DNA of 64,000 bases from Oculina patagonica (lineage: Eukaryota). The notes beneath the pieces are model-generated. The model was not told where the DNA came from. It saw nothing but the letters and a program-made list of their open reading frames with translations, and searched no databases. A program made the position numbers and the translations under genes. The stretch lies in contig NC_135760.1 of assembly GCF_052425735.1 (NCBI RefSeq), forward strand, positions 26,722,001 through 26,786,000, given 5' to 3'. Shown here in pieces: positions 3,461-48,099 of the stretch; position 1 is the stretch's first letter, and each line of letters opens with the position of its first letter.

Positions 3461-6400
3461 ATGGTAAGTTCTTCCATGGATAAACCCTCGATGGAAGATA
3501 CAACTGGCACTAAGGTTGTATTTGATGGCGGATCCAAATCTGCTAATTCTGTATCGAAAAATCATCCTCGAAGGACCGCGTTGGTCATAATTGGTTTAGC
3601 AGTTCTTCTATTCCTTGTAGCTGTAGTTTTGTCAGCTGCTGGGTATAGGCGAAGAGAGAAGGAAAGAACGAAATCTTCCACGTGCTCTGTTGCTGAAGTG
3701 AACTTGGAGCAGGGTGAAATACTGATGTATGAAGTTGAACAGAAGTTAGAAATACGAGGCGGAGACGTACAGAAAGGTACAGTTCATACCCCGGGGGGGG
3801 GGGGGGTACTCCCTATAATGGCCTATACGGGGAGGCTCCGCCCGAAAGGGGTACCTTTTTCAGGCTTCAGGTATATAAAAGGGTAGGGATTTCACGAGTT
3901 TAAGTATATGAAAGGGTATGGAAATCTGTCATTTGGCTATTTAAAAGGGCCTTTAATTAAAATATTTCGAACAGACGCAATTTATGGCTGTATTATTTTA
4001 ATTTATTAAGCGCTACATAAAAATGACAAGAAAACGTCCTATTTTAAGTCCACGCCATGTCTCTTAGGTATATGAAAAGGGTACCTTTTTTCAGTTAAAG
4101 GTATACGAAAGGGGTACAATTTCTGTCAAAAATGGTATATAAAAGGGTAAGGGGTTAGAACTTGGGGCGGAGCCTCCCCGTATAAATCTTTTCTGAGTAC
4201 CCCTCCCCCCCCCCCCCCGGGAGTTCATAACGAAAAAACTTTTCTTTCTATACTCATATATAAAAGGTATCGTGCTCTTTTCCTTTTCAACTTATGACGT
4301 TTAGTTATGTAAACTTAAATTATTTGTATATTTTATATGTATTGATAAAATTTCAAAGGAATCCCAATCGGCTTGCTATACAGTCAAACGTGGGTCAACC
4401 TCGTGTTTTCGAGTCTGTCTGTTTACTACCTGTAATCCATCATGATTTCCATTTTCGCCATCGCTAGACATCCTGACTTCCTAACGGGTTCCATTCGCTA
4501 TTCTAGTACTGTTCTACAAATTCAAAACATTTTGGTCTGTACTTCAGTTTTTAAGTGATGCAGGGTTTTAATTAAATATGACCTACTTGAAATCATGTTC
4601 CAAATCGACTCGGTGCAATAACCAGAATCATCAATTATCTGGAAACACCGAAAGTTCACTAGTGAAAAAAATTAATTTTTAATTTAAAACAGCCGGTTTT
4701 GGCCGCTTTTGCCAATAAAGAAAGGAGCATAGGCTATCATACATGTTGCTGAGCGAATATTACTTTATGGCTCTTGGTCTCTTTTTCACAGTCTCCCTCA
4801 TACCACGAATTAAGTCTAGCAAATCTCTCTTTCTAATTGCGATATGTCTACACCATAGAATCTTGTCCGGCCATCGCAATGAAGTGAAGGCCGGGTATAA
4901 ATTAATTACAGTGGAACCCCGTCAAGACGAACCTCTTTATAACGAAGTCACGGTACAACCAACGATATTTTTGTAGCCTCCAGCGTAGCAGACGCCTGTG
5001 TAGTTTTTGGGTGCGCATTTGAGAAACACGAAACTCGCGGTGCTTAAGAAGCCACGCGTGGCCTTCAACCCGACCAAAGTTACTAACAATAAAATGTATT
5101 AAATAATAAAGATGGTAAATTTTAATTTTTTAGAGCGCCCAACCGGTATCTGGGAGGCCATGGGTTCGATTCCCGTCGGGGACTCAGAATTTTTCTTTGT
5201 CCCATGCTCGTGTCATGTAGAACATCTTATCTTTAATAAAATGTATGATAAAGACCCCGGTACATCTTTAATAAAATGTATGACAAAGACCCCGGTACAA
5301 AGAAATCTCGTTATAATGAACATAGTTTCAAAATCGATTCCGAGTCCCTTGGATCCTTGGTATTTCGTTCTATCGGGGTTCCTCTGTAGCAATATCTCAG
5401 TTTTTTTCTATTCCTCAGGTACAATCATTGCAATTGTTGAAATCCGTGTTCTTAACAAGACATCAGAGGAGTATTGGTTCCTAATGAAGATCAACATCAC
5501 TGTAGAGGGTGACAACGTGGGTAATATGGGCGGAGTGAAGTCAGGGATAACAGATTACTTTCTCATCAAACTTAAGGTCACCTCAAGGTAATTAACATGT
5601 GGTTTCCGGTCGCAAAATCAATTTAACCAAAACGGGAAACGACTTTTAATTCGTGTCACTTGGGAGGTTCGGGTAATCAAGTGTTCGAGACTGAAATAAA
5701 AAGATCATGTTCTACATGCACATCGTAAGTAAATAATCTGTGATTTGAAAATATTGAATGAAAACCTATTCGTTATAGGCAGTTCACGGCCTCTTTATTT
5801 TTGAACGCAAAATCATCTCGAGAAAAAAAGGGTGAGAGTGAAGCGTGAGGGGGTACCCCTCACGATAAAATAGAATTAATTACGATAAAATAGAAGACAC
5901 AGCCGCGGTGCTGTGCTCCGCTCCGCTGCGCTGCGCNNNNNNNNNNNNNNNNNNNNNNNNNNNNNNNNNNNNNNNNNNNNNNNNNNNNNNNNNNNNNNNN
6001 NNNNNNNNNNNNNNNNNNNNNNNNNNNNNNNNNNNNNNNNNNNNNNNNNNNNNNNNNNNNNNNNNNNNNNNNNNNNNNNNNNNNNNNNNNNNNNNNNNNN
6101 NNNNNNNNNNNNNNNNNNNNNNNNNNNNNNNNNNNNNNNNNNNNNNNNNNNNNNNNNNNNNNNNNNNNNNNNNNNNNNNNNNNNNNNNNNNNNNNNNNNN
6201 NNNNNNNNNNNNNNNNNNNNNNNNNNNNNNNNNNNNNNNNNNNNNNNNNNNNNNNNNNNNNNNNNNNNNNNNNNNNNNNNNNNNNNNNNNNNNNNNNNNN
6301 NNNNNNNNNNNNNNNNNNNNNNNNNNNNNNNNNNGTGGAAAGAGACTTGTCTTTTCCTCTTTCTATCAAACCACAAGTGCGCATGATCGGACGATTTTAA

Positions 6401-8905
6401 TTGTAAAATTCTATAATTGTTTAAGTTTAAATTAGTCGAATCCACATTTGTCCACATTTATGCTTGTTTGCTTGTTTGTTTGTTAACAGGTTGAAGTCGA
6501 CGCACGCAAATAATGAAACAGCTGAGTCGTTTGAACTGTACGGACACCAAAAAACCGATGGAGATTTCCTTCGTTATGTGTACAGCATCGTTAACCAGCT
6601 TCTTCCTGCTGTAAAACAGGATCTTTACGAAGATGTCGATGGAAAGAGAGTCAACCCAAAAAACGAACTAAACCCTGAGATTTCTCCATTGTTCCCTGGG
6701 GCCGTGAAAATGCACAGAAAGGCAAACACATCGGACAAAACCGCAGTTTTGATCGAGAACCATTTTAACCGTACTGATCTTGTCAACGTGTCATCTGAAA
6801 TTGATTTGGACATGACTTATTCTGACTTGATGTTCATTAACAAGACCAACGGAATGGTAACAGAAAGCCGCGCGTACTTGTCAGAGCAGCTAAACTTTGG
6901 AGAACCAATCCACAGCAAAAGTGGTTTTGACATAACAAAGATGAATGTAACGCTGCTAAGTAAGATTACACTCATTGAAGACAGCCCCAGCAGCAGTCAC
7001 CTTGCAGACGCGGAATTTGCAGCTGTTAAAACCCGTGCATTTGTTAAGCTTGTCTTGCCCAAATCTGACGCATATTTTACCCTGAACGAAAAGCCAGTTG
7101 AAGCAGCAAATATATGCCTTAATTCGAGTGGTAGTTCCTTCAATGATTCAGACTGCTCTAACACCAACACAACAGGGCCACATTCCACTGTAAAACGGAC
7201 ACGCAGAGCCGGCCGATTCACCCGTAACAGATGGAATGGCTTAAATAAACAAAATCTTCGCGCCACTATTAGAAGAACACCAACACTTTTCGAGAAGAAA
7301 GTGATCGGAATAAACGTTAAAGGAGAAACAAATGTTTGGCTTACGCCTAAACACCGGCATCGCTTCGAGGTGGGCGTTGGCTTTACGCTGCGATTTGGCA
7401 GTCTTAGCGTTGGGCTGTTCCATAAACGGTTCAACGATCAACAGATTAAGAGGGGCAGTTTTATCAGGATAAGAAACAAATGGGAAAAGAGATTTGTAAG
7501 TATCTCTATTTTGTATAAAAGTGTAATGACTAAGAGCAGCATGGGGTGACATGAAAGCTGTGAAAAGTTAAACTGGTATAATAACATTAACATGCAAGAG
7601 ACAACAAGGAATTCTTGTCTTAGTGATTCAGCCAAATTTTCACAAAGAATCTATGGCTAATTTTATCATCAGACCATATACATTCACTGAAGATTTATGC
7701 CTATAAAAATAGCTTTAGGCTTAAAAACCTTCCTTTCGATCTTTAATGGACCTTTTTGGTGATATGCCGTGTGGTTATACTCTTTTCATTCATTTCATTA
7801 TCTCTAGCTTCATTTCCATTTTGTTTTGTCGTCCCTTTCTTTATTTTCGGCCAAAACCCCTTACCACTATTTGATCACGCCCACGGTTTGGGCGGGATGT
7901 TGCTACGGAAACAAGATCTTTCCTGATAAGGGGATGTGTCAACTATCTGAATGCTCGTATCATTCCCGGCCGATTGGACAATCTCTTTGGCTACTTGCCA
8001 CATTAAACGCGATTTTTTTCCGCAGGCCGAAACACTAAATAAACTTGTTTTTCTCAAGACCATGCTGTTGTTTCAATCTACAGGCTATTGAGGTTCCGGT
8101 TTACTTCCTCAGACTGGGTGTGGAGTTTAGTCTGTGGATTCCAGTGGACATCACGCTGAGGTTTCCTCACAGGGAAAACTCGCTCTCTCCACCAAAGCTT
8201 GCTGTAGAGGTAACAGATTAAATCAGATTTTACAGTTCTTTATAAGAAACCTCTTAATAAAAATATTTTGCGGCCAAGAAAGCAAACGCATTTTAAAAAC
8301 ATACTGAGGAACCTTTAATCTTTAATTGTAATAACTTCCATTAGAATACTAATCCGGCAATGGTACAGGCCAGCGGCTAGCAAAGACAACAAAAAATTAT
8401 CATTACATGCAGTTACAAAGTTTTGATATTTTCTTCGACTACATAATTACATAAGCAAACTACAATTCCCCAAGTTTAACCAACTTATAGTCCGTTTTTA
8501 TATAATTATCTCTGAGTTAAGTTATCTTTTAGTGCTTATGCCTCGTTTAATTTACCTTTCGTTCAGATCGAGCCCTCGGTTGCCGTGACAACCAGTCTCG
8601 CAGGCTATGTATCAGTCTACGTTCTTCGCGCGGGAGTTTATGGCGATGGAACCCTGGTGCGAGGAAGCCTCCCTGTCAAGCTGTCGTACCGCGCAGACCG
8701 TTATCCAGGAAGGAAATGGTGCCTAGCTCTTTCAGCAAGGATGACTGCCATAGAGCTTGAAGCAGGAATTTTCTATCAATGGATTTCATGTAAATGGTCG
8801 TGGTTCTGGTTTAAATGTGATTGGGGCGATCGAAGCACTCTTTACCGTTTTGGAAAATGGGCCGCTTATAGATTCAACTGGAAGCTGTTTGAAACTTGCT
8901 TCTAA
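3461..8905 (+). CDS. Uncharacterised type II membrane proprotein, paralog 1 (exons 3461/3476-3776, 5419-5587, 6490-7495, 8084-8209, 8567-8905; ~646-651 aa)
   Basis: All junctions GT-AG and frame-preserving (phases 1,2,0,0). TM segment ALVIIGLAVLLFLVAVVLSAAG; motifs AEVNLEQGE, RVLNKTSEEYWFLMK, QLLPAVKQDLYEDVDG, INKTNGMVTESRAYLSEQLNFG shared with paralogs 2 and 3; RTRR cleavage site. Confidence 0.88.
3789..4221. mobile_element. MITE with CCCGG(n)TAC termini and perfect 8-bp TSD, in paralog 1 intron 1
   Basis: TSD agttcata at 3781-3788 and 4222-4229; inverted subterminal tatacggggaggctccgccc / gggcggagcctccccgtata. Confidence 0.88.
4909..5386. mobile_element. Tc1/mariner-pogo-type MITE (TA TSD) with a nested SINE fragment
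   Basis: ta|cagtggaaccccg ... cggggttcctctg|ta; same family as 46522-46697; tRNA B-box gggttcgattccc near 5162. Confidence 0.65.
5937..6334. other. Assembly gap (run of N) inside paralog 1 intron 2
   Basis: Continuous N characters. Confidence 1.
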
Positions 8906-11901: not shown

Positions 11902-14900
11902 TCAAAAACACAGATTAAATGCGTCGTACGATATATCGATACCATCCAATTCACCAAATTTTTTGTATACCTCCCAGTCTGACCATTCGCATAACGGCAC
12001 CAACCAAAACCCGAATAAGAAATGCGTCCAATGTAATTTGCACCTAAAGCGTTGATAAACAGAACTAGCTGTCAACTTCAAAGCAGTAAAGTGAGGGCGT
12101 AACTGCATGCATATTCCGTCCAGTGATGCGTCGTCATCATTTAGGATTCCTTGGTACGTGAATGAGAGGGGTAAACTGACTTTTACGATAGTCCCAGTAC
12201 CTCTCGCTCCAGCTTTAGCAGGCCATACTTCCGCAAATCCTGTGATTGCAGCCACGACCTCTCCGATTGGCTTAATCTAAGAAAAAAGGGACATTTATGA
12301 TTGTCAGCCGGTTTACAATCCAAGATCACTGTAGTTATTACAGCCATTACAGATAATTTGATAACAGCGAAAGCTATAACACTTCTCACAACTCACTTTT
12401 TCCATCAAGCTTTGTATCGTGTTTCATACAGGTTTACTCGTGGAGAGAGTAGCGCTGATGAGACCGTTTCGGCTCAAAACAGACAGGTATTGTTCTTTTT
12501 ACATTTCTTATCCCCGTCGTTTACGTTTTGCAAGTATATAGAACCGATTAGAACTCCAAGTCATTTCTCAAGTGAGCTTGGCTATTATTCACAGCTTACT
12601 TTGGCTAACAATTTGACCTCTAAATCAACCTAAATGAAAGAAATCATTATCCACGGATAACTTAGAGATTGATGCTAATTCTGTAATAACATTATCCTGA
12701 ATAGTCGATCAAACAATCAGTTACTCTTTTGTTCAATCCGTAAGTCAAACAGCTAATCTTTCAGTCAGTTTTTTTTTTTTTTTTTTTTATTGATAATCAA
12801 CACTTTACAAAATTAGAAGATAAGATTTAACCTATACTTATGTGCAATAGATTTTTACTTTACAATTTAGTTTCTCAAGGTTTTTTTTTTTTTTTACACC
12901 GTATACTAAAACATACAAAATTATAGGTACAACAGGAGTATTCTTTACCTACCTAACTTTTTATTTAGACGTTTTCTCAAATGCTTTCCATTTTTTGTTG
13001 AACACGTTAATCTGATTTGTTAATCTTTCAGTCAGTTAATAAGTCAGTCAGTGTCAGTTAGTCAGGCAGACAGTCAGACGGTCAGTCAGTCAGTCAGTTA
13101 GTCAGACAGACAGTCAGACGGTCAGTAAGTTAGTCAGACAGACAGTAAGACGGCCAGTCACTCAGTTAAATAATCAGTCAATTAGTTAATCAGTCAGTCA
13201 GCTAGTCAATTAGTCAGTCAATCAGTCAGTCAGTCAATCAGTCAATCCGTCAATCAGTCATTCAATTAATTTGTCAATTAGTCATTCAATCAGTCAGTCA
13301 GTCAATCCTTAAATCAATCAGTCAGTTAATCTTTCAGTCAGTCAGTCAGTTAATAAGTCAGTCAGTCAGATAGTCAGACGGTCAGTCAATCGGTAAAATA
13401 ATCAGTCAATCAGTTAATCAGTCTGTCAGTTAGTCAATCAGTTAGTCAATCAGCCAGTCAAACAGTCATTCAGTCAGTTAATAAGTCAGTCAGTTAGTCA
13501 GTCGATCAGTCAGTCAGTCAGTCAGTCAATCAGTCAATCAGTCAATCAATCAGTCAGTCATTTAGTAAGTCAGTCAATCGGTCAGTCGGTTAACATCAAA
13601 GTCAGTCAAGCAATCAGTCACTCACACACTCACTCAGTCCCTCAGTCGGGAAGTCAATCGAGTTACCGTAATCAAACAGTGAGTCGGTCAATCAGTTTGT
13701 AAGTGGGTAGGTCAATGAGTTAGTCAATCGGTCAAGTCAGTCATTCGGTAATTCAGTCAGTACATTAATTAATTCATTCGTTCAGTTAGTCAGCTATCCC
13801 CAGTGAGCTGCAGTCAGTCAATTGATCAACAGTATATTTCTTTTTACCTCTATAGCTTGACCGCCATCCTTCTTGGGAAAGTTAAAGTCAATAAAGATTT
13901 TAAACTCCAGCTCGAATTCCACACCAAGAATTACGTCATAGACGAGAGTTTCGCGAGTCTAAGGAAAACAGAAATGGCGAGGTTAGCATAATTTAGCTGC
14001 GCCAATCGAAAGAAAGTGAAACTGTGGGAAAGCCTTTAATCCTGGCTGGGTGGTGAATAAGAGAGAGGTGGGTGGGAGTGAGTAATAGTAATAGTAATAG
14101 TAATAGTAATAGTAATAGTAATAGTAATAGTAATAGTAATAGTAATAGTAATAGTATATCTTTATTGCGCCTTACTCTCCAAAGGGAGGTATTGGTCTGT
14201 TTACAAAGGTTTTGTCATTAACTAATATATTTAAGAAATAACAAAGACTAGATTCTTATACAATTGATAATGTAAATGTAAAATTGAATCAATTATAACG
14301 TTCATTATGTTTGTAAGTTAAGAAGCTCTTTCCTTTTTTTGAAACATAAAAAAAAGTCTGTCTCCGAGCCAAGTGGCCCATACAGCCGGAGCTTATCCCG
14401 GTTTCCGTAGCATTAAGCAACTGAGAGTATTGCTACTCCCCCTGGATGGGATGCTAGTCCATCGCAGGGATTACCCCCTAAAAATGTATATATTTACCTA
14501 CTATTTTTGATGTATTTTTATTGTCAGCTCAAAGTAAGTAAGTGAGTATGAAAGTAACTTAGAAGCCCGGGTAAAAACATTATTCAGTTTAAAGAGTGTG
14601 GCACATATTACAGTTTACTCAGACGAACAAGTGACCCTTATTTTTGGATATTGTGGAAATATAATGAAATTATAATAAGTACTTTATAAATTGTTAATTG
14701 ACTCATAAAAGCGGCACACATCCTTACCCAACGAAAACTCTGATAAGTAACTTTGTCAATCATATGATAGATGCCCGAAGCTATTATTCTTTAAGTATAA
14801 TGTTGAAAAAGCGTTATTTAAAGTATACTTACAAATTTTTTATTCCATGATTCTGTAACTGCATTTTCGGCGTTGGTTCCGGCCTCCCAAGCATAGGTTC

Positions 14901-17900
14901 GGTGTAGGACCTCAACAGCAAAATCCCCGAATTTAATGATTACTTCCACTCCTATTTCCAAGGCCTCCTTAACTCTCGCTTCCACCCAAACTTTGCCTCC
15001 TCCTGATATGTCAATTCCAATCACCTCTTTATGAAACAATTTGATTCTCTTCGTAAATGTTTCTGATATACTTCTTTTATGTCTGGTGATACTTCCATTC
15101 ATTGAGCTTGATGTCGGTGTGGAGTTGTTCTGAGTCAGGTAAGCTGAGTCATTACATGACGGCTTGTGACCTGAATTAAAGGCTTGATCAGCATTCTTAG
15201 CACCTGACACAGTCAGCCTCACAAATGACTGAGTTCTAAGGACTTCGGCCCCCGCAAAGTAAAGGGCATCGGTCTCGATAAGGGTCACGTGACTAAAAAC
15301 GGTTATGTCCATCATGGTGACATCAGAACCACTTTTAGTGCGAATGGGTGTTCCAAAATTCATCTGCTCTGACAAGAAGGCGTGGCTTTCTGTTACCATT
15401 CCATTGCTCTTGTTAATGGACGCTCTGTCGCTGTACGCCATATTCATGTCAATTGCTGACGTAAAGTTGACAAGATCTGAGCGATTAAAACGATTTTTGA
15501 TGAAGACAACGCCCTTGTCTAATGTGTTAGCCTCCCTGTGCATTTTAACAGCTCCCGGGACTCGTGCAGATTTTTCTGGGTTCAACTGTTCCGACTTCTC
15601 TCCGTCTACATCTTCGTAAAGATCCCTTTTCACGGCTGGAAGAAGTTGGTCAAGTATGCGGTACATAAAACGAATGAATTCCTTGTCAGTAGTCCTATTT
15701 CCAAAAAGTTCAAATGATTCTCCGGTCCCATTTTCACTGCGTGGAGTTTGAGAGCTAAGGGGAACAAATTAAATTAGAGTCGAAAATGTTCATGAAGACT
15801 ACCATTAACCTGGCAGATTATTTGCATTGTAAATGTGCGTGAGTTTTTGCGTCTCAAAAGTTTCTTAGTCGAGAAAGTGACGTGCACAGACTTTAAAATA
15901 TACTGCAGAAATAATTGAATTGAACTAATGGTTACAATATGTTTTTTCCAAGTTAGCACTAATGTGGTTCTAGCATCGCCGTAAAGCGCAATCTACAAGA
16001 TGAAAGAAAACATTCGTAAACTTCCATCATTCCTTTATCAGTTTAGGTCTCTGTAAAACTGATTTGAACTCAATGGCATCCAAAACATTATTATTTAATT
16101 GTCAGAGTCTTAAGTACTGCTATGCAAACAAACAAACAAATGTTATAAATATGATTTTTTTAAGACTCGATTCCAAGTCAGTAGAGCTTTTTAATAATTG
16201 GCCCGATTTATACTAGAGACGGATGATCCGTCTGGACGAACTTGCATTTTAATTAGGCGAGCATTTTTTAGTTCGTGCGATAATTCGTCTGTGTATAAAT
16301 ACGGGCAAACAGACGGATTATCGGTCCAGACGAGCTATCTTCATAATTCGTCTGCCAAGACGAATTATGAAGAAGAACTAAAAAATGCTCGCCTAATTAA
16401 AAATGCAAGTTTGTCCAGACGGATCATCCGTCTCTAGTATAAATCGGGCCATTCTAAATCGTTCGAAACTGATGTGGGGCTGAAATTAGGAAAGAATCAA
16501 ATCAACTGAATTGATCGAAGAAAAAATCAAAGTACAAGTTACTAAGACAAAAAGACCCCCAAGGATTTAAAATAAAGAAATAAAACTTAAGGTACGTTAT
16601 GATTGGGGAAACAAGGTTAAACTTTTACCTTGAAACAACTTCTAGTCGCACAAGAAAGTAGTCCATTATCATTGTTTTCACTCCTGGTATATCCACATTA
16701 CCAGCCACATAAGAAAGATTGACTTTCATCAGAAACCAATATTCGTCTGCAGTTTTGTTAAGAACTCGGATTCCTACCACTGCATGGATTGTACCTGAAA
16801 TTTCCAAAATTTTTATTCAGAACTAATTCTTGGAGTTTGATCCAAGATAAAGGAGCGATTGTTCGCTAGGAACATCTAAAACTGGTTCGTAGAATTTTTT
16901 TAACTTTGCAAAAAGTTTTATATTCTTGGTTTTTCATGTTACGTCATAAAATTCTGAAATCAAAATTCACTAGGCCTGCTCAATTTTCGTTGTCATTAGG
17001 CGAAAGATAAACTAAAAATATATGTTTTTGCAAATTTCCAAATCGATAGTGTCATTCGTTTTTTAAAACAGAGCACTTTGAATATTGAGTTCTCCGTCGT
17101 ATGTGACTCAAGCTGAGTGCCGTGACATACCGTATTTATTCGATTAAGCGCCCAACCTCGAATAAGCGCCCATCTCGAATAAGCGCCCACCCTGAAGGTA
17201 GGAAAAGTTAATAAGCGCCCAGCCTCGAATAAGCGCCCACCCCCACCCCACAAAAAAGGCTAAGTGCAGAAGAGGAGTTAAAATTGACTAAGTACTACTA
17301 AGAGACTTGCCCAAAGACCGATTTTGTTTTTAGTATTTTACAGAAACTTTTATGGAACAGTTAAAATTCTGCTTTGGTACATCTTCACGTTTTGTTATTA
17401 CTTATTGTTTTGTTAAAAAATCAACTTACTATTTGCTGAAAATGGTGAAAATTTAATAAGCGCCCAGCCTCGAATAAGCGCCCACCTCTCAAGGTCCAAA
17501 AATTTAATAAGCGCCCAGGGCGCTTAATCGAATAAATGCGGTAGCTGTTTTGTTTGAAAAAAGGCCTTTACTTTCCATTTTGTGCAGATTGAACATTTCA
17601 GATATAATAAGTGGTGTTTATGTGAAAGTGTACTAGCTCTTAAGCCAAGGATAGCCGCTGTTGTAAACAGAACTGAGTTCCAGATGGTTTCTCTGACATC
17701 ACGGCGGCCATTACTGTGTCCCTCGGAAGGACACAGTTATGGCGTCTCCATACTAAAACTTTATAAATTTGCGTGGAAAGGTTCGGCAAATAACTCGCGA
17801 ACGGTACACCGTACAGACCCGAAACTTGGAGAAATTGTTTATCTATTTATCATCTATAATATTTGAAATTCATAGCTTCTGTAGTTGAATGGTTTCGAAT

Positions 17901-23777: not shown

Positions 23778-26700
23778 ATGGAAGAGCAATATGTCGCTTT
23801 GCTCCAGAAGATTGTGGCTGAAAATGCTCGTCTCAGAGAAGCGATAGAAGCGCGAGACAACGAACAGCGGCAGATGCTTGAAGACCTTGCTTCCAAAATA
23901 GAGGGCTCTAATTCAGGAGCCGGGCAGGAAAGATCGAGTAGGAAAAGAAGGAGAAAGATCTCTATTCCACAGCATTGCCGTGTAAGTATAATTACATGTA
24001 TTTCTGTTTGTTTGTTCTGACAGAAGTATATCACAGGTGATATGCTTCTGGTTCTGATCAATATTGTTACCACAAGACTGATGACTGCATGTATTGACTC
24101 GCTGATAGGCGATTGACTTTAATTGGGGAAACTGTAAGATCCCTGTTTTCTTTGCTCCTTTAATTTAGTTTGATGTAAAAGAGAATGCCAAGAAGAAGAA
24201 ACAGGAGATGAAAATTCACACATCTCAACACAGGGAGACCACAACAGTTGAGGCATTGAATGAATTTATTTAGTATATACTAAAAGAGTGGATAGCGTTT
24301 TTGGCGTGCGCTGATTGGCTACTCAAACTACGAATATCCTTTGCTATTAAAAACTAGCAATGGTATATTGCAATTCCTGAGTTTTGATTGGTTGACAGAG
24401 AATGATATATGAGCTCATATACCATTGGCCGCAAAATGATAGCCGATTCACATCAGCGAAAACAGCTGGAGTGCTCAAATATTGCAATTCTTAGGGCGTT
24501 TTAAATAAAACAATTATTCCACTCGCGCTTGTTGCATATGAGATCATTATAGCCAATTCGGCGCTATGCACCTCGTTGCCTATCTACCATTTCATATCCA
24601 TTGCGCGCTCGTGGAATAATTGTTAATCATTATTCAACACATGCACGTGCTGCCCATATATGGTCAAAATGTTAACGCTATCTGTCATCCTTACATATCA
24701 TATTCAGATATCCTGCGATATACATAGGTTGCGAAGATTCGTCCGAAATTTTGTAAAGCGGTGCATAATTACAGTTTTTCTATCTGCAAATGGTGTTTCG
24801 TTGACAATTTGTTTTTGTTGTTGTGGTCTCCCTGTGATCTTACACATCACAATAGCGTTATTGCACTGACCATGCCCAGTAAATCTTTGTGTTCTTGCAA
24901 CGTTTGACAAGGAAAAGGCCAGGGTCTCTGTTAACGACATTATAATTTGTTGGGGAGTGAGCATCACACTTCATGAAATTTCAAAGTCAGTTCATGTAAA
25001 CTTGGATCCTTTGTTACTTTCGTTCTGTTCTGTGCTTGTGTGGCAGTCATAAAATAATAGATTGTTTGCATACCTGTGCAAAGACTTCTGGCAGTTGTAG
25101 TAAAAATAGCTATAGCGTAAAGTTGTGCTTTTAAATTTCCTGCATTTCACCACTTTGAACTACATGAGGTCAGTGTGTTGCCGCTATTGTTAGAAAACAG
25201 AGATTCTTTTGTATGAGACAATTTGGCAATGCAGTCTGACGTCATAAACTTCAAATTGGAAGCGCAGGGGAAATTTACAGTAAAAGCCATAATCTTTTCC
25301 CTTTATGGTTGTAATTAAATGTATTTTTCCCTTGTCCGATACAATTTGTAATTAAGGAAGTATATCAAACCACTCAATGTATGTTTGGGAATTTGTTTTG
25401 GATAATTCAGAGATGAAGAACCCTTGCTGGCCCACTTGATGTATAAATTATTATTGTGTAGCTCTGACAAAACTCTAGTTACTTTCTATGTACAGTTTAT
25501 GTGCTGACAACAATGATGCTTTCTTTGGGTCTCAATGCCAAAACCCAGCAGGGGCACATTTTCTGGTTCCCATCACACAACTTCTGTTGCTGTATACTCT
25601 TTGGGCAACTAGAAATACAGCTACATGTACATGTGCATAGTAAGCCAAAGACTTCATCTAAAATTTTGCAGGAAATTTTAAGTTTTATTGTTTTCCTTAC
25701 ATGTACTTTTACAATGTACCTATTTTTTTACAGCAAGACTTCAGAAAGATGTACAAAGCCCTTAAACAGAATGAAGCTTTTGAAGGCTTTAAGTTGGATG
25801 AGAGGTAATGGCCTTTTAAAATATCTACATGTACAACTTATCCCAGGGGGGTACTTGCAGTATACATGGCAGGGGGGGGGGGTGTCCGACGGAGCTTCAT
25901 ATTGGGAACCCAAAAAAATACCAGAGCCTGAAATTTTACACCCAAAAAAATACCTGGCATCAAAACTTTCTACCCCAAAAAGTACAAGACCTAGCACCTT
26001 GATACTGATTTATTCCATCAAACAGACTTTAAGACCTAAAAAAATACATGACAGATCTCTTGACCCAAAAAAATACTGAGGGTGTAAATTTTCAACCCAA
26101 AAAAGTATGTCGGACCTCCCCGTCATGTATACTGCAAGTACCCCCCTGGGAAACTTATGAGTATAAGTCCAAATGCTGAGTCACGTGAAAAACATATACT
26201 TACATTTTATTGTTTGCTTGGAGAAAAACATGCTGTTCATGAGAAGACCTGGTGTACGGAAGGCCGTGGGTTTGACTTACAGTTAGATCTTAATTTTTAC
26301 TTTGTAGGACATTGATGACTGTTACAAACCTAACCATGAAAGTAATGATTACAACTTTTTTTTAGCTTCTTAGCTGAGGCCAACCAGGATGCCACCAAAA
26401 CAGTCATTGAAGCAGTCGTGGCTGAACATGGTGGAAGTGATAAATGCCCCTGGTCTGTGGCTGAAATGAAAGGTTGGTAATTAAACTTGTAGTTGTCTTT
26501 GTTTACTAGTGCTGCCGAGAAAGATTAATGAACAATTTTACCTGTCCTGATGATATACGAGATACAGTATTGTATGAAAAAGCAGAGACTGATATCAATG
26601 ATAAAGGTGTTTACACCTTTTAAGAGTTTTTGAGAAAATATCAGAAAAATCCAAAAGGACAAAGGACAACAATGAATAAAAATCAATAATGTGGATCATT

Positions 26701-28710
26701 TTTGATTTCATTGATTGGTTACTTACATGTAAAAGTTTAGTGGAGCTTCTCAATGAAAAATCAAGACCATATCACAGCATGCAAAGAGTAAGTGTCTGCC
26801 TGAGTAAGTGTACAGTAAGTGAACTTAATCCTTCACTTTCCTGACAAGGGGTATAGAATGGTAATTTCGAGACTTTGCAAAACTGTGAGATCCTGGTTTT
26901 AAAATCCCAAACCGAGACTCTACTTCTAAAAAACTGAGACTGTAAAGTGTGGAGATTTCAAGGTACCGTAATGGTACTGATTAAGTTCTTAGCTGTTGCC
27001 TTTAAAGCTCATAGCTAAGAATAAGTGGAGTGCCAATGACTATCTACAGCGATGTATATTTGCTGAGTCTCTTAGCTTAAATGTTTGGCTAGTTTCCCAC
27101 TTATTATGTGCCGTGTTGGTTATTTACCGCTTCTAACAGTAATATAGTCAGCGTCTGTATTTCAATTTAAGCTAAATTTGCCCTCCAGAATATAATATTT
27201 AATATAATTATAGCTTAATTTCGAGTACAAGATTCCGAGATCCAAATTATTAAAATTTGAGACTCCAAGACAAGTAAAAATGCAATTTCTCAAAATGAAT
27301 ACAGAAGGAAATTTAAAATACTTGTCAAAGGGTCCAAAGGGTCCTCCCATTTCAAAATACATACCTGTACACAAATACCAATGGTACATCATTCGCTTCT
27401 AAGGTGCTGCTACCACTTACTTAAAAAGTCTGTGTGATGCTTCTGCGAGGGAAAAAAAAGGCAAGGTAGAGGCTCACAAAAATATTTGCAGGAAGCAAGG
27501 AAGAATGAGAGAAGTAAGATGTTTTCATGATGACAGATACAACTCAGATACCTCACTGTACTGTAAATAAAGTAGTCGTTTATTTCGTGTTACTGTGTAC
27601 AAACAGTATTTACATGTACAACTCTTGATGCAATGCATACATGTATTTATGGTTGTCCTACATGTAAATGGGGGAGGAGCTTTTTACAATCCCATCAATT
27701 TAAACAACAAATATATAAGTAAAATACTCCAATACTCCAAATATATAAGTAAAATACAACCCTCCAAGTTTATTTTTTTCGTTAGTGGCCATTTGGCCAC
27801 CAACTGCTCAAGTTTGGTCGCCAATGAAAAATTTTAGTCGCTAAATTAAGCTCACGCTTTCAATCCTTCTTCTCAATTTTAGTTGCCAGGCTGGCGACTT
27901 CATTTAAAATTTAGTCACCAGCTCCAAAATTTTAGTCGTCATGGTGACTAAAATGGTCTTAACTTGGAGGGTTGCTATATTCTAATTATTGAAGAAGAAA
28001 TAAGAAATCATGTGCCTTTTAAGTAGGTGAATATGTTGTGGTTCAAATTTTATTTTCCTTTGATTTTGGGTATGGTGAATGAGTTTTAAACAAAGAAAAA
28101 CAAAATTTGAACCAAGGATGAAACTGAAACAAAACAAATAATTATTTCATTAATTAACCTGTTGTATAATTATGCTTTGATTGCCTAGAAAATTCAAAGG
28201 AGGCTTTCGACCTTAAGGACTATGCCATGGTCTGAGGAGAGGAAGGCTGCTATCGAAATGGCTGTGGGAAGCACTTCCTACACCAGCTCAGATGAGTCAG
28301 ACTTTTCTGAGGATGAAAACAGTGAAAGGGTCCTTTCTGGGTATCTTGTGAAGAAGTTGCCATGGGAAAGGAAAACATTGACGAAAGCTAAAAAAGATCT
28401 TGATGATGCATACAAGAAAAGCCTTAAACCAAGGGCAAGGGTGAACCTGGTGACAAGACGGGTTCATCCAAGGCCATCAACACGGTGCCCACCGACTGAT
28501 GTTCTGGAATGGGCAGTCAGGGTTCAAGAGCCAACACCCTCCTCTGACACCAAACCAGCTGCAGCCTTCCTCCAGTGCCCGGATTGTGACAATTTCTACG
28601 CATACCCCATCTCCAAGGATAGCAAGTCCTTCCCCTCACACCCTTCTTCCACCATCCTCAGCAACAGCCCACAGCATGTGTCCTCAGACAATGGCAAACC
28701 TGTCTTGTAG
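23778..28710 (+). CDS. C14orf93-like protein, probably a transposon-associated accessory gene (exons 23778-23981, 25734-25804, 26366-26472, 27404-27513, 28189-28710; ~337 aa)
   Basis: Frame-consistent GT-AG model. N-terminal coiled coil, basic NLS-like RKRRRK, then YTSSDESD...LVKKLPWER...LDDAY...RPSTRCPPTDVLEWAV, the motif series typical of C14orf93-like proteins. Confidence 0.72.
25842..26150. mobile_element. MITE with CCCAGG(n)TAC termini and 8-bp TSD
   Basis: cccaggggggtacttgcagtatacatg / catgtatactgcaagtacccccctggg; flanks caacttat / aaacttat. Confidence 0.85.
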
Positions 28711-36222: not shown

Positions 36223-38400
36223 CTAGATTGGGCACTTGCTGATGATCTCCCATTTCTTTTTAATAGCAGACGAAGTTCCGAATGATTTTATTGTCTTCTT
36301 TTTAGTCCATTTCCACTTCCAAGAAGACCAGCTCCAATACCTCGTCTGATAGTAAATACGAGCACTTAACTTCAAAGCTGTCAAGTCACAGGAAACGTCC
36401 AAGCACCACTCCCCTTCTTTGTATGACAACGTCGCGGGAAGCGCCAGTTCAACCAATGTACCACTTCCATCTATACCACCCTTGGCAAGGAAGATTGAAG
36501 CATAGCCATCGATGCTTGCCGTAACGTCCGCATAAGGTTCGACCTGATAGAGATTAAACAGTGTGAGCGTCAACATTATACTGTAAAACATGCACTGCGA
36601 AACAGCCATGATAATCTTGTTGTTTCAAGGTCTTAAAAAGATTCATCGACTTTCAAGTCTGTGGATTAACATTTGATCTTGTACAGCATTACATATTTAC
36701 TTTATTTTCTCGATTAAACTCCCAGGTATTTATTACAACATTGGCCTGGTGGACCCGGTGTTTATCTTTTTATACCTCGAAAAAAGACTTGAGGGGCTTA
36801 TCTACAATTCCACCTTGGAGATCCTGCGAGAAAAACAGTTTGCGCCTTACTTGAATTATACTTGGACGACATCAATTCGTCACAAAAAATACACCAGTAT
36901 TTGTGATTAATGTCTCCCCTGCAGTATATAGATGTGGGTTTTGACTTCGCGGATTCCAAAATCTTTTAGCTGTACTCTGCATTTCAGCAGCATTGATTAA
37001 CTCACACAATATTGTATTTTTATGGACAGCGGATTCCAGATTCTGGCAGATTGATTGGCAAGAGAAACTTCAACTTAGGTCTTTAAAAAAACATTCAAGC
37101 CTAGTGACAACGGCTCACACATGCTTAATTACCTTTAAACCAATCTTTGGAGGATTAACAGAAATCTGGTCAGGAGGGAAGCTTAACGTAACACCGACAG
37201 TGAGATCCAGGCTGAAATCAACGCCCAACCACAGCACAAATACATAGAAGCCATAGCTCTGAGGAGTGACAAGCACAACATCATTAATACAGTATTTTTC
37301 AAATAATCACCCCCCCCCCCCGAACATAAGCCCTCCCAAAAGCACCCCCCAAAATATCGGAAGTACAAAGTCTTCCGATAATAAGCCCCTCCAAATATAA
37401 AGCCTATATTAACGATTACCTAAGCTGTTAAAGAAAGATAGGAGAGCATATTGTTTTCTATTTTATGTTGCTTCACACAATTTTTCACACGCAACATTGC
37501 TTCAACATATAAACTCAAACACTCAGTTGTACTGCAAAATTTCTTACGACAATAAAAGCACCCCCTCCCTTCCTCCCCGAAAATAATCCCACCAAAAAAT
37601 TTCTTTGAACAATATAAGACCTGGTCGTTTTATTGGATTTTACGATTTGACAGCTGATGATATACTAAAAGCTGCAGAGTTGTATCTGTTATAGGTATCT
37701 GGTATTAGGTATTTTGCAACAAAAACTAACAAATTTAAAAAAACATTCTGAAAACATGTTCTGATTAAAACATGGTTGACTCTCCCACTGAAACTTCGAT
37801 GGAAACATGTGCATTAGGGGGTTGACAGTAACTGTATGCTCGTAATTTTAAGTATTATGTTTCTTGATGTGAACCTCAAGAAAGAGACTGCGGCTGTTAT
37901 GCTTTATGAACTAAGTATGGTAGCCAGAAACACTATTCTTGAAAATTAATCATTTTAAGTACTAGAGGTATTTTAGTCGGAAGATAACAACTTACGATTG
38001 TTTTTCCCTTCGTGAATTCCCTTGTAATGACCTCGCCGCTTGTTAGGTCTCGTCCTTGGAAGCTTTCGAAGAAGATTTTTTTCCAACCGCTAGAACCAAT
38101 TTTGATATAAAAGCCAACTTCTACCTCCTGAGAGTAGGGTTCCAGGTACACGCGACCTTCTCCTTGCACATTTATTCCAACCACCTTCTTCTTGAACACC
38201 TTAAATTTTTCTCTCAATGATGGCAAGTTGCTTGCTTGACTCCATGCTTCTTCTACATCTCCCGCTGCTCTTCGGAACTGGCGTTTAGCAGAAAGGGATG
38301 ATGAATTTGTCGAATTGTGCAGTTCGCCATAATAGGAGCCGTTATTCGGAGACATTTGACTTGAATTAGATGGAGTCGAACCGAAATTATCATTGTCATT

Positions 38401-38436
<36 letters not shown>

Positions 38437-41400
38437 GCTAACAGCCGTGGATTTTGGAACAACTAGTTTCACAAATAAGTGGAAAGTAATAGTTTCCGAT
38501 TCTTTTTTCCCGAAGTAGAATGAGTTGGTTTGATCAATAAGCGAAACTTGGCTAAATAAGTGTATTTTCATAGCGGTAATATCGAAACCATCTTTAGTAT
38601 GAATTGGTTCTCCAAAGTTCAGCTGTTCAGACAAGTACGCGCGGCTTTCTGTAACCATCCCGTTGCTCTTGTTAATTAAGGCAAAATCAGAATATTCCAT
38701 GTCTACATCAATTTCAGATGAGACATTGAGGAGATCTTTACGATTAAAAGATTTGTTTATGAAAACTATGTTTTTATCGGATGTGTTCGCTTTTCTGTGT
38801 ATGTTTACGTCTCCTGGGAGTATAGGCGACTTTTCAGGGTTTAGTTGTGAACCTGAAGGCAATTTCTGTCCATCCACGTCTTCATAAAGATCACGTTTTA
38901 AGGCTGGCAGAAGCTGATCCAGGATGCCGTACACGTAATGAACGAATTCTGCTTCCGTTTGACGGTTTCCATAGAGTTCAAATGGTTCATTGCTTTGTCT
39001 GAAAAAAACAACAATTACATATAGCATTGACGCGTTTTTTTTCTAGTTTCAAAAATGGAATAACAGCTCGCCATCGAAGGGATACAGGGATTGTTTTAGA
39101 CCTACTGGGAACGGAGAGTGGAAGGGATTCAGAAGCCCGCCTGCTGTAACTTAAAAAAAACTGCTTCTGCTATAGTCGCTAAATTAACACAGGATGGTGT
39201 ACTCTTCAATTCCAATTACTAAACATTATGCTTCTTTCATCAGTATTTCCATCAAGTTTGAATGTATAACCACAAAACTTAACAGCTACGTATTTGATAA
39301 CTGATGTCTACTAACACATTGACATATTTTAGATCATCCATCTTGAATTCTTTAAATTGTTTTTTTTTTTATTTAGTAAAATAACTTACAAAATGAAGAA
39401 TCTGAAGTGAAATGTAAAAGTTTTTTGCCTATGGTAGAACGTTTTACTATACGAAAAAATTAAAGAGAAAAAATACATAAATTTTGAAATCAGTTGAAAA
39501 AATCACTCTTCAGAGGCACAAAATGCAAAGGAAAAAAAAATAAATGACTAAATTTAATTCAATTGTCAATGTATTAGCACTGTTGTGTTAGTCGAGGACA
39601 CAGTAAATAAACAAACAAATATACAGTTGCCTGATGCTACTACGCTTATCATAAAAACAAACATTTTATACTGCCTTGCAAAGGAAATTAAAAATAAGTC
39701 ACACACTGTGTACTCTACAAAACTCCACTCAAGTTTTTTACTCTTGTTAAAGGCTACAGATTTTATGAAAAAGTTCCATTTGCAGACAAATTTCAGGTGT
39801 ACCCCGGCTTTAATAAGAATATTAAATAAACAGAAATATTTATCAAGAATTGGTGTTCGACCTCTGAACTTGAGATTATTTTTTATCATCAATATTTTCC
39901 TTTTTCTATGCATATTAAACCTCCATTGCGTGTTTCAGATTACTTTGGGGCCAAAAATATAGCAAAAAAGCCGTGCCAGCCGCCAGCAGAGTATTAACTG
40001 TTTTAGAGCCAAAATAATAATTTGTAGAGTACACAACAGGTTGTAAACTAATTTTAAGATATATTAAAAAGCATTTTAAAACAACTAAAAGTCGAAAACC
40101 TATAGGACTCGTTATAGCATCAATACATGTTAACCAGAAAATGATGAATGTTGACATTGGGGATAAATTGTTTTCTTCCCACTGCTACAAAGTTAACTGA
40201 TTGCTCTGCTCTAAGAACTATGTCTTAGGGACTACCACACTCCATGTTTCTAACAGCATATATAACTGAGAGCCTCGGTGGTTTACAAGCTGAGAAACAT
40301 TTAAACTTTAACTGACAACAGAAAAAAAATCCGAAATTTTACTGACATATTGTGTCTTAGGGCCGAATCGCACTAGCGGACAAGTTTTAAATGTCATAAC
40401 ATTTTTTACAAAAAAAAATTGTCGCGACAAGTCAGAGACATTTTGAAGAAAACAAAAGGTGTAATTATTAGTACAATAGCTCTGCACGTGCTTCTGCCAT
40501 CCCTGTACATTTCTCAGCACGGCCGTCTTGGGCAAACATCAAATATGCAGTACAACGCGGTAAAAAAATCTAAAACAATTGGCATTTAAAGTACGCGTTC
40601 TCATGCAGTAGAATAATGAGTCGTCTCAAGATAACTTTTTCTTTTCTCATTCTAACATTTGGCCGAAACACTTCACTTATAAATATGCTTTGCCTCTCGC
40701 GAAAAGATTTTGCGGCTGGATTACGATAGTGAGAGCCACATCACGGTGCATACTATCCCAACAACTTTTGAGTGCGTGTTGTTTTTCGGTGCAATTTGGG
40801 CCAAACACAATAGCCAATCAACAACGTATTGTTATCTAGCATTACGAGGGGCATGGGAATGCGACTTGTCATGAAAAGTCCTGCCTTGAGGCAGGACTTC
40901 GGCCCCTTTGATGATTTGTCCGTTTTGACAAAATTTGCCCTTGTCCAACAAGTCGTTCGCACTTGTTTTTGCAATTGTTTGACAACATCTATCGCGCGTG
41001 CAACGCGGACCAATCATAAGACAACTGCTTCTTTGTTTTCCTGAAATGTTGGACAAGTTCTAGGTCTCAAAAAACGCTATCGCACTTGTTTTCTGTGACA
41101 AGTGACACGTTAATGATGAAATCAATCAATTGTTACAAAATTTGTCCGCTAGTGCGATTCGGCCCTTACCGACAACTTACAAAAAGTGAATTAAAGACAA
41201 AACCTCGACTGACAAATGGTCAAACCTTTAACCACAACTGACCCACATATTGAATTAAAACACGCAACATTAACTGAGATATATTACAAGTATACCACAA
41301 GTATACTATACCTTGACGAAATGTGAAGTCTCACCAGGAAGTACTCTGCATGCCCCTTTGCTTTCTGATTCAAACCTTGAACATTGATGTTTCCATCCGC

Positions 41401-42769
41401 GAAAGTGATGTTGATTTTCGTAAGGAACCAATACTCGTCTGAAGTCTTGTTAAGGACCCGGAAAGAGACTATGACATGGATGTTACCTGCGGCAATAAAT
41501 ACGTTAGTTAAATGATTTAGCATTTTGCTAAAAAAATAGATAACATGGAGAGTTTAATAGATAGATAAAAATAAAAAGATTAAGAAAAATGAAAAATGAT
41601 TAACAGTATTAAAAGAAAATAGATAGATGGATAATTCTCAAAGAGCAAAACAGTTTTTAAATTAATTTTGGAAGGTATATCCCGTTTTGGTATTTAAAAA
41701 TCCACTTCCCCTTTAACTTGATCAGTTCAAAACTCATTCGTGAACCGATTGCTGTACATGTGTAACGGAAGTCTTGTCAAATAAGGGCCTGTTTACAAGC
41801 AGGTAGGGTAACCCTAGGTGCTAGGGTCGATAGCCCGGGTTACAAGCAAAATTCGCAGGTAGGGTAACCCTACTTAGACATTCCTATCAACAAAGAAACT
41901 GTATCACCCACTCGTAATTTATTTTTGCCCTAAAAGGGACATTTTTTAAACTATGGAAGTCTGCAGAAAGTCCCAACTTTGAACTAGATTGCAAAAATGC
42001 AATCCACGGATTTTACAAAACCCGCGGAAAATTCGATCTTCATGAAGGGAATTTGTTTTAGTAAAATGTTCGATTTTTATACTTGAGGCTTTTCTGATTT
42101 CTCCTGTAATTTAAAATTGCCCAGTGACCATTCACACAATGATTTAGTTCATCCTGGGGAATTTAAAATTTTGATTCGTTTGTCAACAGAAACATCCCAT
42201 AATTTCCGAATCGAAGTGAAATCTTTCAAAATGTATATCTTCACATCGCGAGCTTAGAAATAAACTGCAAATATTAATGTATTTTGTTTTCCTTATTGTC
42301 AGAAGGTGACTGCGGTTTAATAGCTTGATAAGTAAAACATTTAATATTAAGTCGACAAAGAGACCAGCCAATTCTAGAAGAAGGAAAAAACTAGCCAGTT
42401 CGAAAAAGCTTTACATGAGGATAGGGCAGAAAAATGTAAGGGATTGCACGAAACATAAGTTTCAAGTAAAGGCATTCACAATACAATTGTTAAAACAGAA
42501 GTTGACTTACTTTTCTGTACAGTTCCTCTTTCTATTTCTATGTTCTGATCCACGCGATACGTCAGGGTTTCGCCCTCTTCAAGCTTGACTTCTGCCAGCC
42601 TAGTTGGAGTAGTTTTTCTCAGGACGAAAAACGAAGTCACAGAAACCACGGCACCCAGAAACAAAACCAATGCCAAGACACCAATAATAGCGATCTTAGT
42701 TTTCCGAGAGGAACGCTTCTCAGCTAAAGCTTTGGTATCACTGAAGTCCACCTTCGGCTCGGGATCCAT
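36223..42769 (-). CDS. Uncharacterised type II membrane proprotein, paralog 3 (exons 42769-42511, 41486-41312, 38998-37996, 37258-37133, 36543-36223; ~627 aa)
   Basis: GT-AG junctions with phases 1,2,0,0. TM IAIIGVLALVLFLGAVVSVTSFFV; RLAEVKLEEGETLTYRVDQ, RVLNKTSDEYWFLTK, DQLLPALKRDLYEDVDG, INKSNGMVTESRAYLSEQLNFG; poly-Asp linker; KRQFRR basic site. Confidence 0.9.
40360..41165. mobile_element. PIF/Harbinger-type non-autonomous element (TTA TSD)
   Basis: tta|gggccgaatcgcactagcggacaa ... ttgtccgctagtgcgattcggccc|tta. Confidence 0.88.
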
Positions 42770-47725: not shown

Positions 47726-48099
47726 AAATTAGAGTAAACTATGCATTTTCAAACATTGTCTCAAAATTGATTGAAATTCTGTCGATTTTCATCTAATCAT
47801 CCGTCTCTGACAATTTATCTTAAAGAATGCCGTTGACGGATGTTTTTAAAAAGTAGATGTGTCCATGAGAAAAATATTAGCCAGACAGTGACACCGTAAG
47901 TAACTTGGAAAAGTTTTTCGAGTTCTACCAACAGGAGTGGAACCTATGACCTTCCGCACACCGGTCGGTCGCTCTACCACTGAGCTGCAGGAGAATCGTG
48001 GAAGCTCGGCCATATAGCTAGGTGTGTCTAGATGTGTCTACTTCGTCGCGGATTAGGCGAAAATATATGAAAGAGTGAAGTTGTTATTGAGTAGTGTTA

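Follow-up and report, generated by a model that had tools for sequence, protein, structure and literature searches.

Tandem USOMP-1 genes of Oculina patagonica encode putative membrane-anchored, LLTP-like precursors with a conserved convertase-type site and a variable Trp-rich tip

Background

In canonical large lipid transfer proteins (LLTPs), barrel and sheets are packed against each other and remain associated after convertase cleavage (vitellogenin, apolipophorin-II/I), and in insect vitellogenins and apolipophorin-II/I a furin-type cut is made at RXXR beside a Ser-rich linker that follows the barrel. Here we describe three tandem paralogs, referred to as P1, P2 and P3, in a 64,000-nucleotide stretch of the genome of the stony coral Oculina patagonica (NC_135760.1, positions 26,722,001 to 26,786,000; the window hereafter), which, judged by their sequences, belong to USOMP-1 ("skeletal organic matrix protein 1"), a family of hexacorallians. 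We consider it probable (about 0.6) that P1–P3 are membrane-anchored, shortened LLTP-like proteins that are split by a convertase, so that a C-terminal sheet is released which probably binds lipid, membrane or a hydrophobic matrix component.

USOMP-1 was defined from the skeletal proteome of Acropora millepora (PMC3748352). Several members, two of them in tandem, are known from A. digitifera (PMC4890752), and the family was reported from anemones and scleractinians (PMC6824150). These proteins have stood in coral skeletal proteomes since 2013 as orphans that lack a domain, a mechanism and an account of how an anchored protein enters the mineral. The searchable literature holds no mention of a USOMP-1 convertase site, of a C-terminal peptide bias or of an LLTP-like fold, and a structural-proteome paper remarks only that USOMP-like proteins have unannotatable barrel-like regions. 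The family is known by name, and the convertase site, the peptide bias and the LLTP-like architecture are what is new here. The answers offered are a fold assignment, a site that would account for the recovery of the C-terminal half alone from skeleton, and a defined, variable Trp-rich tip.

Results

Three tandem USOMP-1 paralogs in the window

Searching the window by tblastn with pieces of the proteins revealed three tandem paralogs of five exons each, with pairwise identities of 40–43% and uninterrupted reading frames of 651, 609 and 627 amino acids (aa), respectively:

3461..8905, + strand: P1 gene, exons 3461-3776, 5419-5587, 6490-7495, 8084-8209 and 8567-8905; 651 aa
11902..18668, - strand: P2 gene, exons 18668-18395, 16794-16629, 15736-14833, 13958-13848 and 12276-11902; 609 aa, intact
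36223..42769, - strand: P3 gene, exons 42769-42511, 41486-41312, 38998-37996, 37258-37133 and 36543-36223; 627 aa, intact

Once spliced, the P1 translation was identical, residue for residue, to RefSeq XP_078363157.1 (P0078; LOC144647255, Oculina patagonica). The joints of its last two introns (7495>8084 and 8209>8567, with GT..AG ends) were present in contigs from three public studies; as these contigs join the exons exactly as in the model, they derive from spliced RNA.

Searched exhaustively with phmmer, 1.84 billion representatives gave only 57 matches (E 6e-37 to P0021), with the C-terminal domain reaching E 3e-59 to both P0079 and P0080. The Acropora proteins taken for comparison (A. millepora USOMP-1; A. 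digitifera 1a/b/c and aug_v2a.07084; XP_015758124.1) are homologous over their full length (44% over 636 aa to P0079 by BLASTP, ~49% in the C-terminal domain), and share with our paralogs the N-terminal anchor, an aligned RSRR↓A site (the arrow marks the predicted cut), the outer Cys pair and, in A. digitifera, the tandem genes. They differ in having a 34-aa Arg-rich loop and a Ser/Thr/Pro-rich tail or, in the 07084 type, a 6–7-aa loop with no Cys, whereas the P1 and P2 loops are Cys-stapled and Trp-rich.

Apart from the three window genes, only one distant paralog was detected in the Oculina genome, on another contig (C9:6149741-6152900), at 27% to P1 and 49% to P0047. It has one large exon of 629 codons (L001 2562-4451) and at least two more (L001 ~4819-5037 and ~5692-5877). 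A KRKR↓S site is retained, as are both Cys pairs and long runs of acidic residues, but its loop is not Trp-rich. The presence of this close Oculina paralog, at 49% to P0047, suggests that the distant relatives from ENA are anthozoan.

Membrane anchor, linker and convertase-type site

The sequence-only reading had described a type II transmembrane precursor with a convertase-type site, and the anchor, the elements of the topology and the conserved site were all recovered:

3578..3640, + strand: P1 signal-anchor/transmembrane helix, residues 40-60, the 21-aa segment of highest hydrophobicity (Kyte-Doolittle mean 3.0)
7061..7192, + strand: P1 linker of low complexity (Ser/Asn/Asp/Thr), carrying 3 NxS/T sequons
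7193..7207, + strand: P1 polybasic site KRTRR↓AG, its aligned site kept in all relatives
15073..15084, - strand: P2 site RHKR↓SI
38269..38286, - strand: P3 polybasic site KRQFRR↓AA, non-canonical

No signal peptide was found in P1, and the signal anchor precedes all of its sequons and cysteines as well as the convertase site. A type II (N-in, C-out) anchored precursor is supported for all three paralogs. The ~45-aa low-complexity linker is all that separates the two modules of the ectodomain; it is Ser/Asn/Thr-rich and unalignable among relatives. The P3 linker contains a poly-Asp stretch, and those of distant relatives have long runs of acidic residues. Each paralog carries 10–11 NxS/T sequons before the convertase site and none after it. 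A sequon-free C-terminal domain would suit a surface that is kept free for lipid, membrane or matrix contacts. In the P3 linker (~38370-38420, - strand), upstream of the polybasic site, 12 Asp are followed by N/D repeats. Runs of 20–30 Asp/Glu residues were also seen within the first hairpins of the C-terminal domain in distant relatives.

A polybasic site had been proposed at the matching position of each paralog; it was found in all three, no more than 1 nt from the coordinates given earlier. As had been read earlier, the furin consensus fits P1 (RTRR) and P2 (RHKR); P3 does not carry a strict R-x-K/R-R, as its subsite P4 is Gln, with basic residues at subsites P6, P5, P2 and P1. In P1 and in P2, R-x-K/R-R occurs just once in the whole protein, at the convertase site. 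An aligned polybasic motif was present in every relative compared, including Nematostella and the distant fourth Oculina paralog, and also in the scleractinian paralogs, Acropora USOMP-1 (SRSRR↓A), Stylophora and Desmophyllum. The motifs of these relatives (RSRR↓A, RTRR↓G, RSRR↓G/L, RRKR↓S, RKKR↓S and KRKR↓S) directly precede the first conserved strand of the C-terminal domain. The 17 residues that follow the P1 site have a predicted local distance difference test (pLDDT) score below 50 in the model of that domain, and a location of the site in an exposed, extracytoplasmic, disordered and glycan-rich linker is supported.

The site is kept at one aligned position over identities of 22–27% (anemone and distant paralog), beside a linker that cannot be aligned, which is hard to explain without a function. 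We infer a cut by a proprotein convertase at this position, made in the secretory pathway; at least 25 loci with a proprotein-convertase P-domain were counted in the Oculina genome.

Skeletal peptides of Acropora relatives

Takeuchi et al. 2016 (PMC4890752, S3 table) listed mass spectrometry peptides from the A. digitifera skeleton for four family members. Those of Adi-USOMP-1a/b/c are IGPVCLFFDR, GSTSFLESNT(D/V)VSGR, LVVFPGFR/LIVVTGFR and LSLPLQ(N/S)NSVDPPR, while those of aug_v2a.07084, whose C-terminal sequence is of the Acropora subgroup closest to P1, are AGNVVPWNEAGHLSLNTER, VGVYGDGTLVR, VGLPVTLSYQATR and WCLDLSAR (PMC4890752). All of them map C-terminal of the convertase site, and AGNVVPWNEAGHLSLNTER begins immediately after RSRR. 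According to an in-silico digest, 15–17 detectable tryptic peptides lie N-terminal of the site and 12–14 C-terminal of it, and finding 4/4 peptides on the C-terminal side in each of two protein groups would have a probability of ~0.002 under uniform sampling. Since trypsin also cuts after RR, these peptides are indirect evidence of cleavage, and it is indirectly that they support the release of the C-terminal domain. The pattern Arg-X-Lys/Arg-Arg was invoked by the authors of that study for a ZP protein only, not for the USOMP-1 proteins (PMC4890752).

The labels clash in the same source: aug_v2a.07084 is 'Adi-USOMP-10' in the S3 table, while the S22 figure shows its sequence as 'Adi_USOMP-9 (aug_v2a.20893)'. 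Statements on the stage-specific expression of USOMP-9 and USOMP-10 can therefore not be assigned safely.

N-terminal module

The N-terminal module (XP_078363157.1 residues 76-352) was modelled from a 19-sequence alignment, with a pLDDT of 83 and a predicted template modelling score (pTM) of 0.81, and was aligned structurally (VIA) to 48,161 PDB representatives. The top four matches were N-terminal barrels of LLTPs, which covered the whole domain, with 195–222 residues aligned at a root-mean-square deviation (rmsd) of 3.9–4.7:

3686..7060, + strand: P1 N-terminal ectodomain, residues 76-352, exons 1-3; predicted LLTP-type beta-barrel
lipovitellin 1lsh, residues 17-283: VIA Z 15.5 (222 aligned, rmsd 4.2)
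honey-bee vitellogenin, residues 19-324: VIA Z 14.8
ApoB-100, residues 42-311: VIA Z 13.5
MTP, residues 31-292: VIA Z 12.7
next, unrelated chain: VIA Z 9.6

Foldseek likewise returned MTP (E 3e-7) and the ApoB barrel (E 4e-7), and the matches in the AlphaFold cluster library (AFDB) were the N-termini of a 'Lipid transport family protein' and a 'Vitellogenin'. A language-model search added a lead, with a score of 0.85, to a Vitellogenin_N cluster. The model thus strongly indicates that the N-terminal ectodomain is a beta-barrel of the lipovitellin/vitellogenin/ApoB/MTP type. The helical domain of canonical LLTPs was absent from both module models. A complex prediction of the two modules, folded without alignments, scored 0.01 and gave no evidence either way.

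C-terminal module

A beta-domain of ~240 aa had been expected after the site, and the P1 domain, of 250 aa on three exons, is indeed all-beta in the model (residues 402-651, from an 11-sequence alignment; pLDDT 76, pTM 0.54), which consists of a meander of long strands of 13–28 residues each:

7208..8902 (7208-7495, 8084-8209 and 8567-8902), + strand: P1 C-terminal beta-sheet domain, 250 aa, with no NxS/T sequon
8720..8722, + strand: P1 outer Cys C591 (domain C190), whose partner is C650 (domain C249, 8897-8899)

The conserved Cys pair noticed earlier (WC/IC, then a Cys near the C-terminus) is this outer pair, which was invariant in the 11-sequence alignment from Oculina to Nematostella.

Foldseek placed MTP first (E 7e-5, template modelling (TM) score 0.30–0.33), followed by vitellogenin and lipovitellin. 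By VIA, the lipid-binding domain of MTP (615-877) had a Z of 9.5 over 204 residues at rmsd 8.2, and ApoB-100 (Z 8.1), vitellogenin ~900-1135 (Z 7.2) and lipovitellin 784-1066 (Z 6.7) were further LLTP matches. In AFDB, AsmA-like and lipid-transport proteins were matched, whereas structure and feature searches of the ESM-Atlas with the C-terminal domain gave unnamed bacterial clusters and outer-membrane barrels and nothing else. Taken alone, the resemblance of the modelled domain to the MTP lipid-binding domain and the lipovitellin A-sheet is only suggestive, and of moderate strength. It is strengthened because single AFDB entries match both modules in order (D2VC80, 32-315 and 590-848; A0A3S3Q5W3, 28-402 and 814-1046), and MTP also matches the N-terminal and then the C-terminal module in chain order.

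The Trp-rich tip

An aromatic segment after a conserved YQ had been read in each paralog, and the three strings quoted were exact:

8789..8824, + strand: P1 Trp-rich hairpin CKWSWFWFKCDW, with the inner Cys pair (domain 213 and 222) flanking the W-F turn
11983..12042, - strand: P2 tip loop CKLHWTHFLFGFWLVPLCEW
36295..36339, - strand: P3 tip loop YWSWSSWKWKWTKKK, cationic, having lost the inner Cys pair

In the P1 model, a strand at 189-216 is followed by a two-residue W-F turn and a return strand at 219-224 (DSSP; pLDDT 79–90), and, beyond a short bulge, 189-211 is paired with the strand 228-249. This register puts C213 opposite C222 and C190 opposite C249, therefore both P1 Cys pairs can form cross-strand disulfides. 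The Trp-rich segment would then be the stapled tip of the last long hairpin, a part of the fold that projects past its shorter neighbour strands.

The segment varies among the paralogs and across the family, where it is 6–34 aa long and has a mean pairwise identity of 25% vs 58% for the rest of exon 5 (20 sequences), but calling it hypervariable goes too far for orthologs, between which it can equal its surroundings in conservation: P1 and its Desmophyllum counterpart are 0.64 identical in the loop and 0.56 elsewhere. The character of the tip is kept, being aromatic (mostly Trp) plus basic, as in CKWSWFWFKC, CRWHWWRFKC, WWSWWWWD and RGWWFR. An inner Cys pair with no Trp richness was found in the distant Oculina paralog and the Nematostella protein, so that the disulfide-closed loop is ancestral, while Trp richness belongs to the scleractinian subfamily. 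In none of P1–P3 is the hairpin bordered by KR or RR. An arenicin-like excised peptide was accordingly rejected, because processing sites are lacking on both sides and the hairpin is continuous with the long strands.

Discussion

Proposed mechanism and comparison with known systems

We propose that the ectodomain of P1–P3 would consist, in order, of a vitellogenin/MTP/ApoB-type barrel, a glycosylated low-complexity linker and an amphipathic beta-sheet module of ~250 aa. Along the secretory pathway, a convertase would cleave at the end of the linker, leaving the barrel on the cell membrane and releasing the unglycosylated sheet module, with its two disulfide staples, to the exterior. In Acropora, the freed C-terminal part would end occluded in the skeleton. 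Along its sheet, the freed module is likely to bind lipid, membrane or some other hydrophobic component of the matrix, with the aromatic-basic hairpin, rich in Trp, perhaps serving as an interfacial anchor or a ligand-contact site, not as an excised peptide.

With LLTPs (vitellogenin/lipovitellin, MTP, ApoB-100, apolipophorin-II/I), the predicted proteins share an N-terminal barrel followed by a sheet module in the same chain order, and the succession of barrel, Ser-rich linker, RXXR and putative lipid-binding part parallels that of insect vitellogenins and apolipophorin-II/I. However, P1–P3 lack the alpha-helical domain, any vWD or DUF1943 Pfam match and detectable sequence similarity, are only ~650 aa long, and have a signal anchor in place of the cleaved signal peptide. 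The models thus suggest an LLTP-like architecture, although with neither the sequence similarity nor the helical domain by which membership proper is judged. Bacterial AsmA-like and LptD-type sheets were the top AFDB matches of the C-terminal domain (E 1e-8 to 1e-10, TM score 0.44–0.55), but they are prokaryotic, have no sequence similarity and overlap only in part, and the resemblance probably reflects a convergent architecture of large curved amphipathic sheets.

BRICHOS precursors (ITM2B/Bri2, chondromodulin and the arenicin precursor) also combine a type II topology, a furin-type site and a C-terminal product with a disulfide-stapled beta-hairpin, though the product here would be a folded domain of 250 aa and not a peptide of 20–35 aa. 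The BRICHOS logic that had been invoked for the locus holds as a processing logic only. Kinship was rejected, as no Pfam BRICHOS domain (PF04089) was matched and the pro-region folds as an LLTP barrel in the model. Antimicrobial peptides such as arenicin, tachyplesin, indolicidin and tritrpticin resemble the tip in combining Trp with Lys/Arg and, for P1 and P2, in a cross-strand disulfide, but the tip here continues two strands of 22–28 residues, and neither its charge nor its length is consistent within the family.

Evidence for and against

Several observations weigh against the reading of P1–P3 as convertase-split, LLTP-like proteins. The link to LLTPs is structural, since no Pfam family was matched at E up to 10 by 19 N-module and 11 C-module sequences (Vitellogenin_N PF01347, DUF1943 and the MTP lipid-binding family included), and profile searches of PDB sequences gave no match and hence no sequence-level connection. 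For the C-terminal domain, whose model has a pTM of 0.54, fragments of bacterial outer-membrane barrels come nearly level with the LLTPs (Z 7–8.7). The P3 site has no Arg at subsite P4. Plain trypsin digestion would also yield the peptide after RSRR, and the rough estimate of 0.002 rises to ~0.02 if N-glycans hide half of the N-terminal peptides. As the family is also present in non-calcifying sea anemones (PMC6824150), the skeleton is not its sole destination. The orthology table of the O. patagonica skeletal proteome gives USOMP-1 for Acropora only, with no Oculina entry, and a skeletal destination consequently rests on Acropora and not on P1–P3 themselves. The site is observed; the cut at it is what we infer, and lipid binding is conjectural throughout.

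The sequence-only reading had gone on to propose that the released domain is an antimicrobial or pore-forming effector whose Trp hairpin inserts into membranes, possibly as an oligomeric beta-barrel pore. The C-terminal domain is all-beta with very long hairpins and has no glycan sequon, its tip shares the Trp/Arg/Lys richness of antimicrobial peptides of the Trp-rich and beta-hairpin kinds and carries a disulfide staple in P1 and P2, and the domain shows weak structural matches to outer-membrane barrels, the membrane attack complex (MAC), PlyB, perforin-2 and gasdermin pores. The matches to MAC, PlyB and gasdermin, however, have a Foldseek probability of at most 0.15 and VIA Z scores of 5.2–6.8, which lies within the noise for large sheets, while LLTPs, with their lipid-binding sheets, rank first. 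There are no dibasic sites around the hairpin, the net charge of the P1 tip is ~+1, Acropora P0095 has a tip devoid of aromatic residues, and no toxin or pore-former Pfam family was matched by the exon pieces or by 30 relatives. Moreover, the relatives were detected in the skeleton, not in mucus or venom, and are transcribed from the settlement and calcification stages on (PMC4890752). The effector is left unsupported by this evidence, and we judge it improbable. That the aromatic tip of a released, structural matrix component binds polysaccharide (chitin, glycans), mineral or an amorphous precursor seems to us hardly more credible. Exposed Trp clusters such as WWSWWWWD, of a kind typical of carbohydrate-binding surfaces, and the occlusion of relatives in the skeletal matrix speak for it, but no carbohydrate-binding module was matched, the fold matches favour lipid-binding sheets, and the family also occurs in skeleton-less anemones (PMC6824150).

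Other alternatives concern the cut. Perhaps the site is cleaved and the halves stay non-covalently associated, as one lipid-binding cavity or receptor, with the C-terminal domain reaching the skeleton by incidental shedding. Both modules are LLTP-like and collinear, the halves of LLTPs stay together after cleavage, and the family is found in non-calcifying anemones (PMC6824150), all of which count for such an association; yet the Acropora skeleton yields C-terminal peptides only and none from the barrel, and the helical domain that buttresses the cavity of LLTPs is absent, so that we see it as rather unlikely. It is also conceivable, but with little likelihood, that the polybasic motif is not the operative cut, that other extracellular proteases (chymotrypsin-like) shed the ectodomain, and that the peptide bias comes from glycan masking and survival in the mineral. 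Shedding was proposed for transmembrane skeletal organic matrix proteins by Ramos-Silva et al. 2013 (PMC3748352), the 10–11 N-terminal sequons would suppress the detection of peptides, and the peptide after RSRR is tryptic in any case. The deep conservation of the site at one aligned position is what such shedding leaves unexplained, and we prefer convertase cleavage followed by release of the sheet.

If confirmed, convertase-split P1–P3 would give the LLTP superfamily a minimal architecture anchored in the membrane and connect lipid handling with biomineralisation, for which vitellogenin and lipids in skeletal matrices are the only prior hint. A bolder and, for now, doubtful extension is that USOMP-1 is an unrecognised LLTP branch, the released half of which carries lipid or docks to membranes through its Trp tip in the calcifying space. 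Were this true, lipid delivery would be tied directly to the formation of the coral skeleton, and the module of anemones would serve a more general extracellular role, related to lipid or membrane, of which defence could be a part.

Gene models and other features of the window

A masked run of N (5937-6334) falls within intron 2 of P1. No coding sequence is needed there, since in P2 and P3 exon 2 is followed directly by exon 3, and the intron phases are the same. A GC-rich short repeat adjoins the run (flank 5900-5936). The GenBank model KAL9982016.1 (P0073, 803 aa) has an extra low-complexity exon across the run, which is absent from the RefSeq model P0078 (651 aa) and has no counterpart in P2 or P3.

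The introns of P2 contain a long, imperfect tandem array of (TCAG/TCAA)n type (13028-13696, period 8–20, ~70% matches) and a perfect (AGTAAT)12 microsatellite (14081-14156). Between P2 and P3 lies an intronless HSP70 gene of 632 aa (31426-33324, + strand; Pfam HSP70, E 3e-257). Three open reading frames (ORFs) of 162–199 aa on the + strand (25501-26079, 28222-28710 and 54710-55309) had no Pfam match. Finally, an ORF upstream of P1 exon 2 (5112-5380) shares a stretch of 53 aa, at 36% identity, with the opposite strand at 47819-47977, and this common stretch is possibly a dispersed repeat.

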